Source of the DNA: Trichosphaerium sp. ATCC 40318
Taxonomy: Eukaryota > Protista > Tubulinea
Length of the DNA: 64,000 nucleotides
Assembly: GCA_038496445.1 (NCBI GenBank)
Contig: JALMLS010000064.1
Coordinates: 774,758-838,757 of the forward strand
Reading direction: 5' to 3'
Part shown: in pieces, positions 43,458 through 58,476 of the stretch
Position numbering within the stretch: position 1 is the first letter of the stretch
Layout: the number at the start of each line of letters is the position of its first letter
Made by a program: the position numbers and the translations under genes
The notes under the pieces: generated by a model
Databases searched by the model: none
What the model saw: the letters and a program-made list of their open reading frames with translations, nothing else
Told to the model about the DNA's origin: nothing

Positions 43458-44146
43458 ATGGGCGTCTTATCTGTTATTAGCTTCCTTGTCACTGCACTTT
43501 TCACTTTCGTTTTCATTATGGCTGGAACCGTAAAGGTTTCACCACTTGTAGACCCTGCTATTCATGAGGAAATGAAGCAAAACTTTCAAGAGAAATGGGC
43601 CCGTACGTTAAAAATGCAATAAACCGACTGAACCTTACGCCTTTGTAGCAATATTTGGATTAGAGGAGCTACAAGAAGAGTTTCGTGTTGGTCTTGGTGC
43701 CACCGAAATTATCTGCGCACTACTACTTTGGACTCCACTATCTACACTCTCAAACCTCGTATTGATGGTATGTAACACGTCAACGTTAATTTGTTTTTAC
43801 CAAAAACCGTCTAAATCTCCGCCTGCGCTCAAAAACAACGCTAGAGCAACTTTGACACTAAGAAAATCCTTTATTATTGCTCGTGACTCACATCAACACG
43901 GGTCCATTAACTTCGTTTTCTCCGCTTCTCATCAACTACTTAGGTCATTATGGGCGGCGCTGTGTACAGCCACGTTACCGTAGACGATCCACAAGAGAAA
44001 ATTATGGCAAGTCTTTGTTGGCCTTGTTTTGAAGCTAATTTTTTTCTTATCTTTAGGCTCCTGCAATTCTAGGCGCTGGACTATTCGTTCTTTTCGTACT
44101 TAACATGGCAAGCGGATCATCCAAGCAAAAATCAAAGACTGCTTAA
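43458..44146 (+). CDS. TMEM35: TMEM35/NACHO-like (DoxX family) four-TM ER protein; 3 introns
   Basis: FIMAGTVKVSP.VDPAIHEEMKQNF, RVGLGATEIICALLL, MGGAVYSHVTVDDP; KxKxx C-terminus (KSKTA*). Confidence 0.75.
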
Positions 44147-44309
44147 AAAACAAAGCAAACCCTTTGCTAGTACTATACTATTACCTCTCTTCGAGCGTTT
44201 AGAAACAAGAACCAATAAAAAAATGCTCTCCCTTAGTCAGTTAAGCACTCACCGCCCAGTACACTTCTGCTACGTTACAACTGGCTTCCCTGCACGACCA
44301 ACAGTAAGC

Positions 44310-46076
44310 ATGCTCGTTGTAGGGTTGATGAGGTTAGAATATTAATAAACTATGTTAAACTGCTTAAAAACGCTAGTGGCACCTCAGTGGATGGTATCGA
44401 CGCGGTTGTGGCATCAATTAGTGAGAGGTTAGTTGGTAAAGGGACAATTCGTTACGAAATTAAGACTAAAGCGTTTCAAACGTATCCATGGCCAAATAAA
44501 ACGCGAGAGGTGAAGTTTATAGCTTTACTTAGTACATAACTGACAGATGGGGGCATGTAGAAAATATTTTCTCTCTTCACGGAAGCAGGAAGCAACTCAC
44601 AAGCAATATGTCAAGCAAACTTTGAATTGGCGAAAGTTTTTGCTGACACTTCTTTGTCTATTATTAAAGAAGCTGGATTACAGCCTAAGGATATAGCTCT
44701 CATAGGTATGTACTGTGTAGTACCTCGTTGTAGGTGTGATAGTCATAAACACCTCTAGGATCACATGGACAGACAATTTGGCATGATTTTGATCAAAGCA
44801 CTAAGGAAGTATCTAGCACTCTTCAAATCGGTAGGAAAGTTTTGTTTGTTGTATGCTAAAATAGTTGATTAGGTGACCCTTCAGTTATTGCACAGTTAAC
44901 TGGTATAAATCTTTATAAAGCACGTAGTGAAGTCTCATTTTTTTTTAATTATTAGGCATCACGTGCATTGGTGATTTTAGGGTTGCAGATGTTGCAAAAG
45001 GTGGACAAGGAGCTCCACTTACGTCTGTGTTTGACTATCTCGTATTGAGACCAAAATCAGGCAAATTTCGTGCAATACAAAACATAGGTAATGTGGAAAG
45101 CCAAAGGCTCTAATAGTGATGTCGGATTCTAGGTGGTATGGCAAACGTCACATTTGTACCTCCAGAAACGAACAAAGAGTGCAACCCTAGTAAGGTTTTC
45201 CCCAGAAAGATCGACAGATAGAACTCACGCTCTTAAAGTTGCTTTCGATACTGGTCCAGGAAATGTTCTATTAGATTGGCTTGCAACCAAAATATCAAAT
45301 GGAGAAAAAAGATATGATAAAGATGGTGAAATAGGAAAACAAGGAACAATATCCAGTACGTTGCTTATACCTTAAATATTCTAAACAATCATAGATGATT
45401 TACTTGAACATATGCTATCCAATCCATACTTTGATATGGACCCTCCAAAGACAACAGGACGAGAACTCTTTGATAGCAAGGTAAAGAGTATTTTTATCCA
45501 AATCACAAGTACTTAGTCTTTTATTTTAAGCTTGCTGAAGAATGGTTGTTAAAGTCTCAAGAGCTTAATATGAGTAATGAAGATTACATGGCAACACTAA
45601 CTGAGGTAAAGAGTAAAGAAGTTGCACGTGATATTTTTTATATTAAGCTATTTATAGCTCACAGCGAAATCGATCGCTTTGGCATATAAGAAATGGTGTT
45701 CTCCTTTAGGTGTTATTGGTGATGTAGTAATAGGTGGTGGAGGTGCATCTAACCCATTTCTAATGGAAAGACTTCAATTCAATCTCAAAGAATACTGTAA
45801 CAAAGATGTTGCTTTAAAGTCACATGAGGTATAACACACGTTTTCTTGGTTTTTTTTGCTGGGTGAATTATAACTAAAACCGTTCAGGACATTGGTATTG
45901 ATAGTGACGCTAAAGAGGCTCTTGTGTTTGCTCTTTTGGCTTATTTGACAGCTAAGGGTAGAAATGGAAACGTGCCTTCGTGCACTGGTGCTAAGGGAGC
46001 TTGTATTCTCGGTAAAATTGCTCCAAGTGCAAATTTTGTCAGTGTTGTGCTTTCTTCAAACAAGCAAAGTTATTGA
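44310..46076 (+). CDS. anmK: Anhydro-N-acetylmuramic acid kinase / levoglucosan kinase family, multi-exon
   Basis: [103 protein letters not shown]. Confidence 0.93.
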
Positions 46077-46108: not shown

Positions 46109-49100
46109 TTAACAAGCAAGAAGTGCACATAGTTCGGCACATCTAGCTGCTAGCCAATCTTTATGTATTAGAGAATCTAACCATTCTTTTGGTAAACTAC
46201 TGTAACCCATCCTACAGCCCATTAAAGCGCCAGCGACAACTGCATTTCTATGCAAAGTTAAGGAAAACAATAGAACAAGTTACACAACAAAAAAAAGAAG
46301 CAGTTGAAAAGATACGAATCAGCATCTCCAGCTTCTAATGAAATTCGATAAATGGAGCTCTTGAAACAATGTCCTTTTCTCAAGGCTAAAAGTGCTGATC
46401 CCATAGACTTGTATGTGTAACCTACAAAGAAGCTCAGCAAAGTATAGAATACGAACTTAGGTTTTTTGGATAGTTCTCTTGTTTCTAGGATTTTTTCGTA
46501 CCTATGGAGCTTCCTTGATCCAAATCTAGTACATCGAAATCACCATACAAGTATTTTTTAAACTCAGCATAATCTAGTTGGTCCTCATCAAAGCGTTCTA
46601 AAACATGAGCCTCAACTTTTTCACAAATATCTTTCGGATTGTCGTTGCCCATTAACAAAAGTCTAATAGCTTCTGTTATTGCTAAACAACTTGCTTGACA
46701 TCTAGGGTCAACATGTGTAACCTAATAGATAGTGGATACAACAATAGTGATTCCGCTTGCAAAAGTTAAGGCCATAAACGAACTTACCTTACAAACGTCA
46801 ACTGTTTGTTTTGCTACTTTTTCTTTGTCCCAAAAACTAGGTGCACCAAGAATTGCTGTACCTAAATAGAGGATCCGTAAACGCCATAATTTAAGTAGGT
46901 GCTACATACGCATCACTGCACCATTAGCAGCACCAGATCTGTTTTGGCGTTCCCATATTGCACTAACATTAAAAACGTCAAAACGAATAAAACTCAACAA
47001 AAAACTTCACTAACGTTGCTGCTTTATGTGGGTCTTGTAGGAAATCATCGTGTCCAAGTACTCCAGAGACGGTTTTACCTATTTCAAAAAATAAACTCTC
47101 TAGAGCTCTTGCTAAGTTTATTAAAGGTACCGATGCCCATGCCTCCAGAATCTCCCATTTCGGCCATACCCTACATGAATGTTTTAGTGATAATCTATTA
47201 CCTCTATTTGTACTTCGTAAGCCCATCGTAGAAGAGACTCGGCGTATTCTTTTAAGTCAACACTTCCGCCATTTTTTAACAAGTTCATTGCAATAAGAAG
47301 CATTTGATCTGTATCATCTGTCCAGTCACCTTCCTCCCATCGTTTTCTATGTGTTTGAGATCAATTGAGCATGCTTATTCGATTCTATCTTACCTATGAG
47401 GATCTCTGATGATCGAAGAAACTTCGAGATCTTTACCTCCATAATAAAAAAAAGCTTGCTTCTTGGATAAGAACTCTGTTGATAGTCCAACAGCATCTCC
47501 AAGCGCTGCGCCAAACACCAGGCCGAATAATTTATCTCTTAAGGCGTCGCCAGATATAGGTAGGTCTGAAGGGATATCCAAAGGTTTAATGTGGTCAATT
47601 GGAACATTAGAAACGTCAGGAAGTGGTAAGAGTTCTGATGGTTTCAAATCCTTATCGAAAAGGTAAGAACAATATCAGAACCAATTGCTTTTATCGTACT
47701 TCTGGTTCTTGACCTCTTAAGAACTCAAGAATCGATCTACCAGTGCTCATATCTTCTGAAATGATTTTTATAAGTTGCTTGGATTCAAATTTGTTCCCTG
47801 TTAGGTTCAGACGTGTGATAGATGATAAGGTTTTGAATATTTCTTCGTTAATTTTTGTTAATTTGTTGAAGCTGAGGAATAAGCTCTTGAGGTTTGTTAA
47901 GTTCACAATATCGTCAGGAATATCTTTTAAATCATTACAAGACATGTCAAGAGAAGTAAGAGATGTCATTTGAAGTATAGGCGAAGGTATTTCAGAAAAT
48001 CCAGATACTCTAAATAGCTTTTAAGTCCTTTTCAAGGTGAGATAGATGTACCTCAAAGAAATACTTTGGAGATTTGATAGGTTTACAATATCTTTATGAA
48101 TGATTGGTACGGTATTACCATAAAATTCGAGTGTAGTGAGGTTTGTCAGGAGTAAAATCTCTGGTGGAAAAGTAGTCATTTTGTTCAAAGAAAGATCCAA
48201 GTTTGTGAGGTTTGCAAGGTTTTTGAATGTATCAGGTACTGATGCTATACGAGTGCCATGTAAATTTAAATATGTCAACGATTTGCAGTGGCCTTGAAAG
48301 AATTAATACTAGAGTTAGAAGCAGCTTGAGCTTACCTATACTGTCTGGAAGCGATCTAAAAAGATTCTGGTTCAAGTTAAGTTCCTTCAAGTTCTGAAGC
48401 TGCTCGAAGTCCCCAATATCTCTTAACTGGTTGTAATGCGCTAATAGAGTAACCAAACTCTCTGGGAGTTTAGGAAGATGTGTCAATCTCATCTCGCTGA
48501 TGTTCAAGAACGTTAATTTCGACATTGTATCCAAATCTGTTGAAAACGCGAACTGTTAGTTGCCATAATGAGTACACAATCATATTTCGAACCTGGGATA
48601 CGGATAATTGCATCAGATTGGGGTAGGACATGATCTTTCTCGTCTATTGCTTGTATTGGATTGTGATGTAAATCCAAGAATGTCAAGTTTGTCAACTCTT
48701 TAATGAAATCAACATTGCGAAGCCAATTCCACGATAAGTCCAAATGTGTCAAGGAGGTAAATGATGCTAGAACAGTAGGCTCTTTCAATAGGTAGTTCTT
48801 TCGTGCTTTAAGACTTGTTAATTGTTCTTTGAGCGCTATAATTTAAGTTAACTTTCAACTAGGGTAATTGACTTTTTTTTCTGATAAAACCTGACTTAGC
48901 TCACGTGGTAAAGGCTGAACGGGTTCTGTTTACGTGCCTGATAAGTTCTCTAGTTCTGTAAGTTTGTTGTAGCTGATATCAAGAACATGTAACGCAGATA
49001 AACCACCGATGGCTTCATTTAGATTTAACAGTGCCAAACGGCTTAGATCGAGCGATTCAGAGTCCTATTAAGTGTTAGGAGTGTATGAGAGGATGTTTGT

Positions 49101-49264
49101 ACAGATTTGTTAATAATATCTATTGCGAGGGCGTATAGTGCGTTTGAACGCGCTGAGGGATCTTTAAAAAGGTCTTTTACACGTTCTTGCAATGTAGGAC
49201 GTTTTACTGGTTGAAATTGCTTCTTTTCAACGTTTACTGATTCTTTGGAGTCTTTCGCTCCCAT
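46109..49264 (-). CDS. LRR plus ADP-ribosylglycohydrolase (ARH/DraG family) fusion with N-myristoylation motif
   Basis: MGAKDSK start; many LxxLxLxxN repeats (47700-49040); hydrolase motifs GAALGDAVG, GDWTDDTDQ, AANGAVMRT, THVDPRC, GYTYK, GDADSNAVVAGALMG. Confidence 0.9.
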
Positions 49265-49557
49265 TGCAGCCTATTGTTTATGTAATCTTCAAATTGAGAT
49301 ACCCGTTAGGCTAACTGACTTGAGAACTTCACAGAAACATCACTAAACAATCAAAATTAGTCATGACTTTTTGCGACTTCCAGCTCGTTTGAACACCTGA
49401 AAGACTCCGCTTAAAGCTGTAATGACATGAAATGTTACACATAACCACAAGTAACACGAACAAATATACAGTGAAGCTCTGTAGAGCAGATCTTTTTTCA
49501 ATCATACTAAGTTTAGACTAGGCTAAATACTTTATTTCAATATGAGTACTGGGTACT

Positions 49558-50109
49558 TTATCCTATTATAAGGTTCTTACAGACGATGTCATCGTGGATT
49601 GTTGTACTACCCCCACCTCCTATTCTGATGTCGGCATTTGGGTTGTTCATCTTTCCGCGAATGTGCACGTGATTTCCTGGACTACTTGCTATTTTTACCT
49701 CAAGTATTGTTATACGGGAAGCATCTTTAACAACCCATTCCGGAAACTGTTTAGCATTCAGTCCATTCCACGCTGGGTGCATGCCGTGACAAGAATTATA
49801 GCCTTGAGATACCCAAGACCCTTGGTAATCATTTTGTTCTCCACTGAAGCGAAATTAGAAATAGAAAGGAAGAATAGTTCCGTACGGTTGAGTCTTGAGT
49901 TTACCGAGGTTAACTTGTACTTTAACGAGAAAAAGCGTTCCCTTTTGACCAGTTTGTTCAGCACGAAGCTTAGCGACTTCAATAGCGTATTGTTCAGTTG
50001 TAAGATACACACCAGGACCAAGTCTGCCTCTACTGCTTGGTCTCAACCCATTAGAGGTAATACTCGCTACGCAGTCAGCTTTTGTGCCGTGGTAAAGTGT
50101 TGTTGACAT
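49558..50109 (-). CDS. Gig2-like / PARP-fold ADP-ribosyltransferase; 1 intron (49844-49885)
   Basis: LYHGT..CVASITSNGLRPS..GRLGPGVYLT, VQVNLGK, SWVSQGYNSC, QFPEWVVKDASRI; the intron joins the two ORF-track fragments in frame. Confidence 0.82.
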
Positions 50110-50158: not shown

Positions 50159-50188
50159 CAACGAGTTCCTTAAAAAAGGAACTCGTTG
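50159..50188. promoter_or_regulatory. Perfect 13-bp-stem hairpin/palindrome 50-80 bp upstream of the ART start codon
   Basis: CAACGAGTTCCTT-aaaa-AAGGAACTCGTTG; regulatory role is inferred from position only. Confidence 0.5.
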
Positions 50189-50397: not shown

Positions 50398-51487
50398 TTA
50401 CAAAACAATTAGTCCTGTTACAATAAAGAGAATTGGTAGTAATCCTACAGTGACTCCACTTGAAGGTGCTGTAGTTGGCTCTGGTGTAGTTGGTTGCGTT
50501 GTTGGTGATTCCGTAAACGGCGCTATTGTTGGTGGCGGTAAAGTTGATGGAGGTTCTGTAGGAGGTGGAGTAGTTGTTGGCAAAGTAGTTGGTGGCTCTG
50601 TAACAGGTGGTTCAGTATAAGGAGGCGCTGTAGTTGGTGGTTGAGTTGTAGGCGATTGAGGATTGAGAGGCGGGTAGCAATCTCCGTAGGCAGTCTCATT
50701 AACAGCGGTCTGGTTTGTAATAGCATAGTGCGTATTAAAGTAGCTTTCTACCATCTCAATCTCTTCTGTTGTGAGAGTCCTGTTGTATACGATAATCTCA
50801 GCTACCTCCCACTGTGAACGTTGTAAAGCTGTGTCCATGTAGTTGTTGATGGTAAAGTGATCTGGATCCTCGGTTTCGCCATCAATATTATGCACTGTTA
50901 GGTTGTAGCCATTTCCTCTGTAATTTCTACGCTGGGACACAGACAATACCCAGCTGTTCCCAAATTTATCTCCTTGTGTTGTAAGCCATGCCGGGCCTCC
51001 AATCGATGGGTTTCTACCGTTGCCAGCTACACCGGACCATTGATTGACATGACCTGAGTACCAATTTGTTGGAGAGCGAGTAGTGAATATACGAGCGCGA
51101 TTTGCTGTTGTTTCGCTAGCGTATCTACAAGCAGGTTAAAGAGTGTCTCGGTATTGATTTAGGTTACCTGCTAAGTCCAAAGAATGTCATGGAGTCACCA
51201 ATGGCGCCACTAAAGACCATTGTATCTGCTGTACCGCCATACAGAGTTTGGTATATTTTCCCATTAACATACTCCTTAGGCGCTACTTTGGGCGCTCCTC
51301 GCGTCTCAGTAGAGTTGTGGCCGTTTCCAGAAACATCCACCCAAACTTTTGTAATATTATCGTATGAATCCCCTCTTAGCCACGTAAATACGCTGTCGCC
51401 TAGAGGTAAGCAGCAGCTACATGATGCTGTGGTTTGACTGATAAACAGAAACAGTGAGAGAAATAATACAACGTGACTTGTTGCCAT
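50398..51487 (-). CDS. Cell-surface LamG/concanavalin-like domain protein with Thr/Pro stalk and C-terminal hydrophobic (GPI or TM) anchor; 1 intron
   Basis: Signal peptide; WLRGDSY...WVDVSGNGHN and WEVAEIIVYNRTLTTEEIEMVESY motifs; PPTT repeats; hydrophobic C-terminus. Confidence 0.78.
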
Positions 51488-56185: not shown

Positions 56186-58372
56186 CTACTGGAAGGATTC
56201 ATAAGATCCATCACTGTATTCGTCACTGTACTCATCAGTGTACTCGTCACTTTCGCTTTCGGTATCATCAGAATAATACTCTTCTTCATATTGAACTAAC
56301 CCTTCACCAGTAACCTCTTCATAGCTAACAGGAGATAAGGATCGCGTGAACTTCAAGCAAATAACAAAAAATCACGTACGAATCTGAAAAGTCTTCGTAT
56401 TCACGTGCAACTTCATCGCCTGGGTATACATCTACTCTACCTTCTTCTGATTCAACTTTTGTTGTATCAGCTTGGTATCTAACTTCAGCAGAAGACTATA
56501 AATTGTAAGACATAAAATTAAAATAAAAAACAATAGTTAGTTGTTTCGCCACGTACGGAATCCATTGGTACGCCTGCAGATGGTGTTTGCACATGAGTTG
56601 TTGTAAAATTAACAAGTTCATTTTCGTCCTCTTTCTTAGGTCCACTAGACCCACTAGACGAACACGAACAAGAACAAACACTGCAGCAACAAATAAACAA
56701 AATAATTAGTGCAATCAATATTGCAGCGCCTAAAAATTCATTAGCTCCCTTTCTAACTACAACCTCTATTAAAACATACCTGCACCGCCACCAATACCAA
56801 TCCATAGTGCATTTACTTCCAAAAAAGATTGTTCATCTGCAATACAATCAACACATTCTCGTTCAGATGATGAAGTAAGAGTTGAAGGCGTAACAGCGGC
56901 AGGAGATGACTAATAGAATAAGTAAACTTTTTCCAACATAAAGGTACTGTACAGTAACCGTTGCATCTGTTGTATTGGCTTGTAGCGCAGCTTCAAATCC
57001 AGCAGTTGAACCCTAATTTGTGTTAAGGCAGCCAAGAGAAAAATACCACATACCAAAAATGTAGCAACAGGGGTAGCTGCGTCAGTACCATTAAAACGTG
57101 CATTATAGCTTGTAGTTTGCTCAATACTCTTCTTTGAAGTCGGTTGTTGTGTAACAACAGGTCTAATACCTGTTTCTTGCTGAAGAAAGTCTTCAGCAAA
57201 TACAATTTCAGCACTATCAAGTGGTCTTGAAACAGCAAAGACTACGTCTACTGATCCAACGACACAACGTGGACTATTGGGTCCAAATGTAACTACACCA
57301 CGCTTGTATAGCAGTTAGATTAGGTGCCTATAACATTAACGTACACCAAGAGTCCATGTTCCTTCAGTAGTGAACGAAAGTTCAAAATTTCTTACAGGAA
57401 AAAAAGGAGCTGTTGAAGTGAAATCCGTAGGTTGACCACGTGCCTAAAGTAAGGGTTTAGATATTCATTTGCAACAAGATTAAAATTTAAGCTTACGCCT
57501 GGTTCGGAGAAGGTATTATTTGATTCGCCAGCAACCAAGTTTAACACAGGTTCCTGAAAAATGATAAGATGTTTGTACTAGAGCATTAAAACACAAACCT
57601 GAGATAAAAGATTCCATCCCAAGAGAGCTATGAAGCTACCAGCAGATTGTCCAGGTAAAATACAATCGAGGCGAGGTTCTTGTGCGGGTTAGTTCATGCG
57701 CATGTGTGGAAGTTATAAATGCGTACCTATCGCCGGGAAAGAGGCAACTGACACTTCTGTAGGAGGTTCAGTAGTTGTAGGCGCAACAGTTGTATTTGTG
57801 GTATTAGATGGAGCTACGGGTGCAGTTGGCATAGTTGGCGGTTCTGTTGGTGCCTCAGTTGTTGGTGACGCTGTTGTTGGCGCATTTGTAGGCGCAATGG
57901 TTGTGGTTGGTGGTTCTGTAGGTGATTCTGTTGTAGGCGCTTCTGTAGTTGGAGTTTCTGTAGTTGGAGTTTCTGTTGTTGGTACGTCAGTGGTAGGAGG
58001 TACGGTAGTAGGAGCGTTTGTTGTTGGAGCGTCAGTTGTTGGTGTTTCTGTTGTTGGGGCTTCTGTGGTTGGAGTTTCTGTTGTTGGTGCGTCAGTGGTG
58101 GGTGGTATGGTAGTAGGAGCGTCTGTGGTTGGTGGCGCTGTTGTTGGTGGGTTGGTAGTAGGAGCCGTAGTTGTTGGTGCGTCAGTGGTGGGAGGTACGG
58201 TAGTAGGAGCGTCTGTAGTTGGTGGCGCTGTTGTTGGAGCCTCGGTAGTAGGAGCATCTGTTGTTGGTGGCACCGTTGTCGGTGGTACAGTTGTTGGAGG
58301 CGCTGTTTGCGCTTGCACAGCAATAAACGCAAATAGCGCTACAATGATAAATATATCAACAATAGCCCTCAT
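56186..58372 (-). CDS. Mucin-like type I membrane protein: T/P repeat stalk, globular domain, TM, Cys cluster, acidic Tyr-rich tail
   Basis: Signal peptide; many PTT[DE]A / PPTT pentapeptides; RGQPTDF module; TM AAILIALIILFICCCSVCSCSC. Confidence 0.78.
57760..58305 (-). repeat. Coding 15-bp-period tandem repeat (PTT[DE]A/PTTVP/PTTET)
   Basis: Degenerate pentapeptide repeats in ORF 57713..58384. Confidence 0.9.
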
Positions 58373-58476
58373 GAAAGATAGCAAGCTCTATTTGCAATTG
58401 CTGATTTGTTTGACTAAAAACTACCAAAAGTTTAGCGTTTTTTTCTATTGTTTTGTTGCAATAACACTGAGAAACC

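Follow-up and report, generated by a model that had tools for sequence, protein, structure and literature searches.

An ADP-ribosyltransferase gene and an LRR-ADP-ribosylhydrolase gene lie side by side in Trichosphaerium, probably as coincidental neighbours rather than as a conserved module

A 64,000-nt stretch of the genome of the amoeba Trichosphaerium sp. ATCC 40318 (hereafter the window; contig C7:774758-838757 of a 70.3-Mb, 642-contig genome) carries, next to one another on its minus strand, a gene for a small ADP-ribosyltransferase (ART) and a gene for a protein in which leucine-rich repeats (LRR) are joined to an ADP-ribosylhydrolase (ARH) domain. The region is eukaryotic by its sequence, with ~38% GC and GT-AG introns that are short (38-102 nt). 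The genome published for Trichosphaerium agrees with these figures: it measures 70.87 Mb, with 37.7% GC and introns of 75 bp on average (PMC10521059). Each of the two genes is present in a single copy in the 70.3-Mb genome. The account favoured here, which we consider fairly probable rather than secure, is that these are two separate, intact genes that became neighbours through lineage-specific gene order, and not the halves of a conserved module. The parts of the two genes, in window positions, are the following.

49886-50109, minus strand: ART exon 1, with the histidine motif LYHGT and the tyrosine motif GRLGPGVYLT, identified from the open reading frame, the Pfam PARP match and the PARP3 alignment.
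49844-49885, minus strand: predicted ART intron of 42 nt (GTACGG...TTCAG), read from the sequence.
49558-49843, minus strand: ART exon 2, with the MHPAW motif, the catalytic glutamate in FPEWVV, a 46-codon tail and the stop TAA, identified from the family alignment.
49265-49557, minus strand: spacer of 293 bp from the ART stop to the LRR-ARH start, with an intron-like codon-usage score in all three frames.
49103-49264, minus strand: LRR-ARH exon 1, with the N-myristoylation motif MGAKDSK and a basic, probably helical leader.
47700-49064, minus strand: LRR-ARH exons 2-6, about 14 LRRs (Pfam LRR_8, LRR_4 and LRR_14).
46109-47650, minus strand: LRR-ARH exons 7-15, a linker and a complete ARH domain, with the stop TAA at 46109-46111, identified by Pfam and NCBIfam matches on single exons.

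These parts agree with an earlier interpretation made from the letters alone (the sequence-only reading). That reading had described a small PARP-fold ART with HGT, GVY and PEW motifs, which are found here as LYHGT, GPGVYLT and FPEWVV, and had placed it about 290 bp upstream of, and on the same strand as, a gene encoding MGAKDSK, an LRR array and an ARH domain with intact TDD and GDADS motifs. The two genes are indeed co-oriented and 293 bp apart, the LRR matches fall on exons 2-6, and the two hydrolase motifs are present as WTDDTDQ and GDADSN.

The ART gene is modelled with two exons encoding 169 aa, from an ATG at 50109 to a TAA stop at 49558, and an in-frame stop lies ten codons 5' of the ATG. 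The splice is predicted to yield a continuous domain, colinear with relatives of the protein and with EluGig2A, an entry in a published table of Gig2 proteins. The window proteins were scanned against Pfam exon by exon, not as spliced wholes; ART exon 1 alone matches PARP (PF00644) at 24.3 bits, below the gathering cut-off of 26.7, and exon 2 has no Pfam match. The PARP3 alignment of exon 1 covers the histidine and tyrosine motifs (LYHGT, GPGVY), and the glutamate of FPEWVV lines up with the FSEVVV, FPEVLV and FIEIVV motifs of relatives. The histidine, tyrosine and glutamate of the NAD+ site stand in canonical order and spacing, giving a complete H-Y-E triad. By these motifs, the product is probably an NAD+-dependent ADP-ribosyltransferase of the H-Y-E class. 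The last 46 codons, for which no relatives were found, look coding in their own frame: with a codon-usage table taken from the LRR-ARH exons they score -0.06, whereas the other two frames give -0.68 and -0.72, and a score of -0.06 is attained by 0.9% of shuffles. Because this tail is coding, the ART gene has a stop of its own.

The LRR-ARH gene is modelled with 15 exons encoding 789 aa (49264-46109, minus strand), with no internal stop, and its ATG at 49264 is preceded by an in-frame stop two codons 5'. Intron 2 needs a GC donor (GC-AG; G/GCACGT at 48937), which was chosen because it restores both the reading frame and a regular LRR register of 22-25 residues. The amino terminus, MGAKDSK, fits the N-myristoylation rule G-{EDRKHPFYW}-x-x-[STAGCN]-{P}, as checked by eye. 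The ARH domain (PF03747) contains the motifs GDAVGLSTEF, WTDDTDQ, NGAVMR, THVDPRC and GDADSN, with both acidic metal-binding motifs and the TH motif present, and its exon boundaries are exactly colinear with homologues. The window protein therefore has an MG start, an LRR solenoid and a C-terminal ARH domain in a single polypeptide within a range of 600-900 aa.

Evidence that this layout is shared by a family came from a full HMMER search in which ARH exon 7 was compared with 1.84 billion representatives and which returned 142 hits. All 34 hits of at least 500 aa have an ARH domain and 25 of them also have LRRs, so that the layout occurs in at least 25 clusters; all ten of the long top hits combine LRRs with ADP_ribosyl_GH, and the ARH domains of homologues score 129-194 bits. 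The sources include Amoebozoa (Pelomyxa schiedti, Balamuthia mandrillaris, Copromyxa protea, Protostelium nocturnum and Mastigella eilhardi), other protists (Anaeramoeba flamelloides, A. ignava, Diphylleia rotans and Rhodelphis limneticus) and animals (Argopecten, Octopus, Elysia, Sinanodonta, Parasteatoda, Darwinula and Branchiostoma), the animals being molluscs, a spider, an ostracod and amphioxus. The identity of the window gene to three homologues, P0002, P0021 and P0143, is ~35% over the LRR and ARH regions. An alignment of ten full-length members has 53 invariant columns, and the window exons match all of them; three of these residues are encoded by split codons, and the splice model reads the family residue at each. 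An MG start is found in nine of the ten members (in P0021, the ninth, behind one extra leading residue) and in most of the shorter animal branch, and the glycine at position 2 is nearly invariant across the family. This conserved N-terminal glycine supports N-myristoylation. No paper describing an LRR-ARH protein was found among open-access texts, and the family, which is ancient, widespread and not lineage-specific, is apparently undescribed. One member, P0001 of Pelomyxa schiedti (KAH3759553.1), bears the name "Histone deacetylase 6" at NCBI; by its Pfam matches it consists of LRRs and ADP_ribosyl_GH, and the public name looks wrong. On an ENA-assembled eukaryotic contig (L005:13895-15064), a SIR2_2 (NAD+-consuming) gene stands two genes downstream of an LRR-ARH homologue, in one instance.

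The family also bears on where the two genes end and begin. A donor-like GAG/GTAAAA at 49698 could be spliced to an acceptor AATAG/GCTGCAATG at 49273, removing an intron of ~420 nt and producing a single ART-LRR-ARH fusion protein. Both sites are in phase 0 and are compatible. However, the 46 codons past the putative donor are open and coding-like, and the other introns of the gene measure 38-102 nt. The homologues begin at MG, and in the closest of them, an intronless transcript contig, a stop precedes the MG by two codons; moreover, the conserved myristoylation glycine would become internal in a fusion. A single fused gene is thus very improbable, and two separate genes are the preferred structure.

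Exon-by-exon searches of the PDB with the window ARH domain gave MJ1187, Tri1 (6dre) and DraG as the best relatives, and NCBIfam gave weak Tri1 and DraG matches on single exons. The whole ARH domain of P0002 matched MJ1187 (7e-21), Tri1 (6dre; 1e-18), a Thermus ARH (9e-15) and DraG (1e-11) in the PDB, and neither human ARH1 nor human ARH3 matched it at E<=1e-3. In the AlphaFold model of P0002 (predicted local distance difference test, pLDDT, 80.5; predicted TM score, pTM, 0.79), the N-terminus is disordered and is followed by a helix and a solenoid of 15 strands; a disordered linker of ~30 residues then leads to the ARH domain, which is all-helical. In Foldseek comparisons, the nearest structures to the solenoid were Leptospira LRR proteins, SHOC2, internalins and Roco LRRs, and the ARH domain matched MJ1187 with a TM score of 0.85. 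Language-model neighbours were SHOC2, RSU1 and LRRC57-type proteins, at scores of 0.80 that serve as a lead only.

The window protein thus shares with DraG, Tri1 and MJ1187 the ARH fold and all of the metal-binding and TH motifs, and these are the best PDB matches by both sequence and fold. Whereas those proteins are prokaryotic, single-domain and ~300-360 aa long, the window protein is eukaryotic, is encoded by a gene with 14 introns, and adds a myristoylation motif and an LRR solenoid of ~340 aa. Human ARH1 and ARH3 belong to the same Pfam family and carry out the same general reaction, but they have neither LRRs nor a lipid anchor. Conversely, SHOC2, RSU1 and LRRC57-type cytosolic proteins have LRRs of the same class and no enzymatic domain. 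To our knowledge, the eukaryotic ARHs known so far are soluble single-domain enzymes.

Together, these features suggest how the LRR-ARH protein might work. A myristoylated glycine at position 2, as the conserved MG start suggests, would anchor the protein at a membrane, on its cytosolic side, and the concave face of its SHOC2/internalin-type LRR solenoid would hold a protein client. The ARH domain, which is predicted to be a binuclear-metal enzyme of the DraG/Tri1/MJ1187 type, would then cleave mono-ADP-ribose from that client, most likely from arginine if the nearest characterised relatives are a guide. The adduct itself could come from one of the amoeba's many ARTs, or from toxins of its bacterial prey.

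The second of these sources, which the sequence-only reading had also put forward as effectors of ingested bacteria, leads to a more specific version of the favoured account, in which the LRR-ARH protein is mainly a detoxifier and not a regulator of endogenous signalling: it would undo the ADP-ribosylation of arginines that bacterial toxins, from ingested or invading cells, place on host proteins near the membrane. Tri1 and mammalian ARH1 have protective roles in which they reverse arginine ADP-ribosylation, and Tri1 and DraG are the nearest characterised relatives of the window ARH domain. The distribution of the family is informative in this respect. In the animal branch (~620-660 aa; P0012, P0015, P0026, P0056, P0081 and P0098, from scallop, spider, amphioxus and octopus), the TDD and GDAD motifs are replaced, and by this loss the animal proteins are probably pseudo-hydrolases; ARH2 stands in a similar pseudo-enzyme relation to ARH1. 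The protist branch and the window gene retain both motifs, and the branch with intact catalytic residues occurs mainly among phagotrophic protists, which speaks for a detoxifier. However, a role as scaffold or in signalling fits better with a family that occurs in animals too and is partly catalytically dead there, and a comparison with the PADLOC defence families gave no match. We regard the detoxifier version as possible but unlikely.

Relatives of the ART were found in a scan of metagenomes, at 46-59% identity over the first 40 residues. Two of them, on high-GC marine contigs (L006:52-1644 and L007:1178-2395), are 59% identical to the window ART over residues 4-42 and are fused to a SAM domain and a RanBP2-type zinc finger; these fusions also carry a Gly-rich leader and Cys-rich motifs. 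Two others, on low-GC contigs (31-34% GC; L008:1274-1700 and L009:2229-2650), have the mini-ART behind a CCHC knuckle and contain in-frame TAA and TAG codons, and these contigs presumably use the ciliate nuclear code. The family alignment contains [YF]HGT, GRLGPGVY, an HP[GA][YW] block and the glutamate in F[PS]E[VW]V, all of which are present in the two window exons. No ARH or LRR was found on the contigs that carry the ART relatives, and a word search with two pieces of the ART gave no match. A fold prediction for the L006 protein from a 4-row alignment was poor (pLDDT 55).

The study of Gig2 (grass carp reovirus-induced gene 2) lists sequences with the same motif order as the window ART (PMC3617106). 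The authors considered the family to be restricted to vertebrates other than amniotes, apart from a few marine or algal outliers, and placed EluGig2A with algal sequences (PMC3617106). In a comparison made by eye, not computed, EluGig2A (their Table S1) is strikingly similar to the window protein: the two have GLRPS and GRLGPGVYLT in common, and the MHPPW block is also shared. Like Gig2, the window ART is a small stand-alone protein whose motifs follow the order [YF]HGT, G.LG.GVY, a Trp-containing middle block and a glutamate in the last strand, and its PARP match is weak and sub-threshold, as is also reported for Gig2 (PMC3617106). It differs from Gig2 in coming from an amoeba, not a vertebrate, and in its 46-aa tail without relatives. 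The name "Gig2-like", which the sequence-only reading had used, therefore holds at the level of motifs compared by eye, and appears reasonable. No paper on the enzymology of Gig2 was found among open-access texts. A viral origin of the ART was considered and was not established: the nearest Atlas clusters are small PARP proteins of giant viruses (score 0.90, a lead only), and scans of viral contigs returned for the window ART only a phage polyvalent-type protein with an HGT/GxY region, and nothing for L006.

The juxtaposition of the two genes invites comparison with DraT/DraG and Tre1/Tri1, bacterial systems in which the ART and ARH genes keep a conserved linkage and the ART is an arginine-modifying enzyme of the R-S-E class. 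In the window, too, an ART gene adjoins an ARH gene, and the sequence-only reading had proposed that the pair is a writer/eraser defence module, and had named a lack of conserved linkage among the results that would refute it. Six loci with an LRR-ARH homologue were compared, from Balamuthia, Pelomyxa, Anaeramoeba, one ENA assembly and two Logan assemblies, with flanks of ±10 kb in five of them and the whole 6.1-kb contig in the sixth. None of the six has a PARP-annotated gene near the LRR-ARH homologue. A tblastn search of these loci with the ART exons found nothing below E 0.1, and an unfiltered search of their six-frame pieces with a hidden Markov model (HMM) of the ART family found nothing below E 2; the HMM recovered the window's own exons, which are among its training sequences and so provide no real control. 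The linkage seen in DraT/DraG and Tre1/Tri1 is thus found at none of the six loci for the window pair. The window ART further differs from DraT and Tre1 in having an H-Y-E rather than an R-S-E triad, and a chemical mismatch between an H-Y-E ART and a hydrolase near the arginine-specific DraG/Tri1 group is plausible.

The content of the Trichosphaerium genome also has to be considered. It contains about 22 ARH loci and at least 41 PARP-type loci (86 first-look candidates), and with so many genes of both kinds, one close pair is unsurprising. Under random placement, 22 x 41 x 10 kb / 70.3 Mb = 0.13 pairs are expected within 5 kb, or 0.27 if all 86 candidates are counted, and erasers of other folds would push this expectation higher. 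The window locus is the only place in the genome where ARH and PARP matches lie within 10 kb of each other; the next nearest pair is 48 kb apart. The spacing itself has a counterpart on the other side of the ART gene, where its start lies 288 bp from the stop (50398) of an upstream gene unrelated to the pair, a distance near-equal to the 293-bp spacer. The sequence-only reading had itself allowed that adjacency alone could be chance, a caution that these numbers bear out, and the absence of linkage, the enzyme class and the chance expectation leave its defence module without support. The pairing is probably coincidental.

A weaker form of the module would confine it to the Trichosphaerium lineage. 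In such a recent writer/eraser pair, the ART would modify a target or itself, and the tethered LRR-ARH would restrain or reverse it. The positions of two single-copy genes on the same strand 293 bp apart, the apparent catalytic integrity of both proteins and the unusually large ADP-ribosylation toolkit of the genome are all consistent with this model. The model is harder to reconcile with the absence of the linkage in the other six genomes and with the age of the LRR-ARH family, which is much older than the lineage and whose members lack a neighbouring ART at the loci examined. In addition, the ART is of the H-Y-E class, whereas the adducts removed by the hydrolase's nearest characterised relatives sit on arginine and are the work of R-S-E ARTs, and 0.13-0.27 such pairs are expected by chance. 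We consider a lineage-specific pair improbable.

Several considerations nevertheless weigh against the favoured account of two independent neighbours. Both genes are single-copy, and the prior for the adjacency of this particular pair is ~2 in 27,369 genes; the adjacency is unsurprising only because the search was post hoc, such that any writer next to any eraser would have drawn attention. The co-orientation of the genes at a distance of 293 bp makes co-regulation possible. The six comparison genomes are distant (~35% identity), and a young, lineage-specific pairing would be invisible to the synteny comparison. Lastly, the ART-family HMM was built from six rows, and a diverged ART could escape it. 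A bolder combination of these ideas is that the MG-LRR-ARH proteins are an ancient class of membrane-tethered, LRR-guided erasers, with a dead animal branch, and that the Gig2-like ART was acquired in the Trichosphaerium lineage as a dedicated, co-regulated writer. Such a pair would be the equivalent, in a eukaryote, of the ART/ARH pairs of bacteria and would provide the first mechanistic context for Gig2 proteins, but we rate it as a long shot. Two separate genes brought together by lineage-specific gene order remain the account that we prefer.

The surroundings of the pair contain further features. The upstream neighbour of the ART gene (50398-51487, minus strand) has no Pfam match; its product combines a signal peptide with a mucin-like stretch rich in Pro and Thr and a membrane span at the C-terminus. 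Another open reading frame rich in Pro and Thr lies at 57713-58384. Between this neighbour and the ART gene is one more feature.

50159-50188, no strand assigned: perfect 13-bp inverted repeat, CAACGAGTTCCTT / AAGGAACTCGTTG, its arms separated by 4 nt, located 50 bp upstream of the ART ATG and unique in the 70-Mb genome.

This repeat may form a hairpin at the 3' end of the upstream gene, or it may be a palindrome with a regulatory role. On the other side of the pair, at about 44000-46076 on the plus strand, is a gene with introns that belongs to the bacterial-type AnmK family (anhydro-N-acetylmuramic acid / levoglucosan kinase, PF03702), which stands tail-to-tail with the LRR-ARH gene, their stop codons being 33 bp apart.

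For the organism, the pair carries a caution: adjacency is a poor guide to function in a genome so rich in ADP-ribosylation genes. For Gig2, a fish antiviral gene of unknown mechanism, the presence of clear relatives with intact H-Y-E triads in an amoeba, in marine protists and on contigs with a ciliate code speaks against an origin confined to vertebrates. The LRR-ARH proteins, for their part, make up a family that combines an N-myristoylation signal, SHOC2-like LRRs and a DraG/Tri1-type hydrolase, and that spans Amoebozoa, Anaeramoeba, CRuMs, Rhodelphis and invertebrates. Unlike the soluble single-domain ARHs of eukaryotes, such proteins would put the removal of ADP-ribose at membranes, on a client selected by the LRRs.

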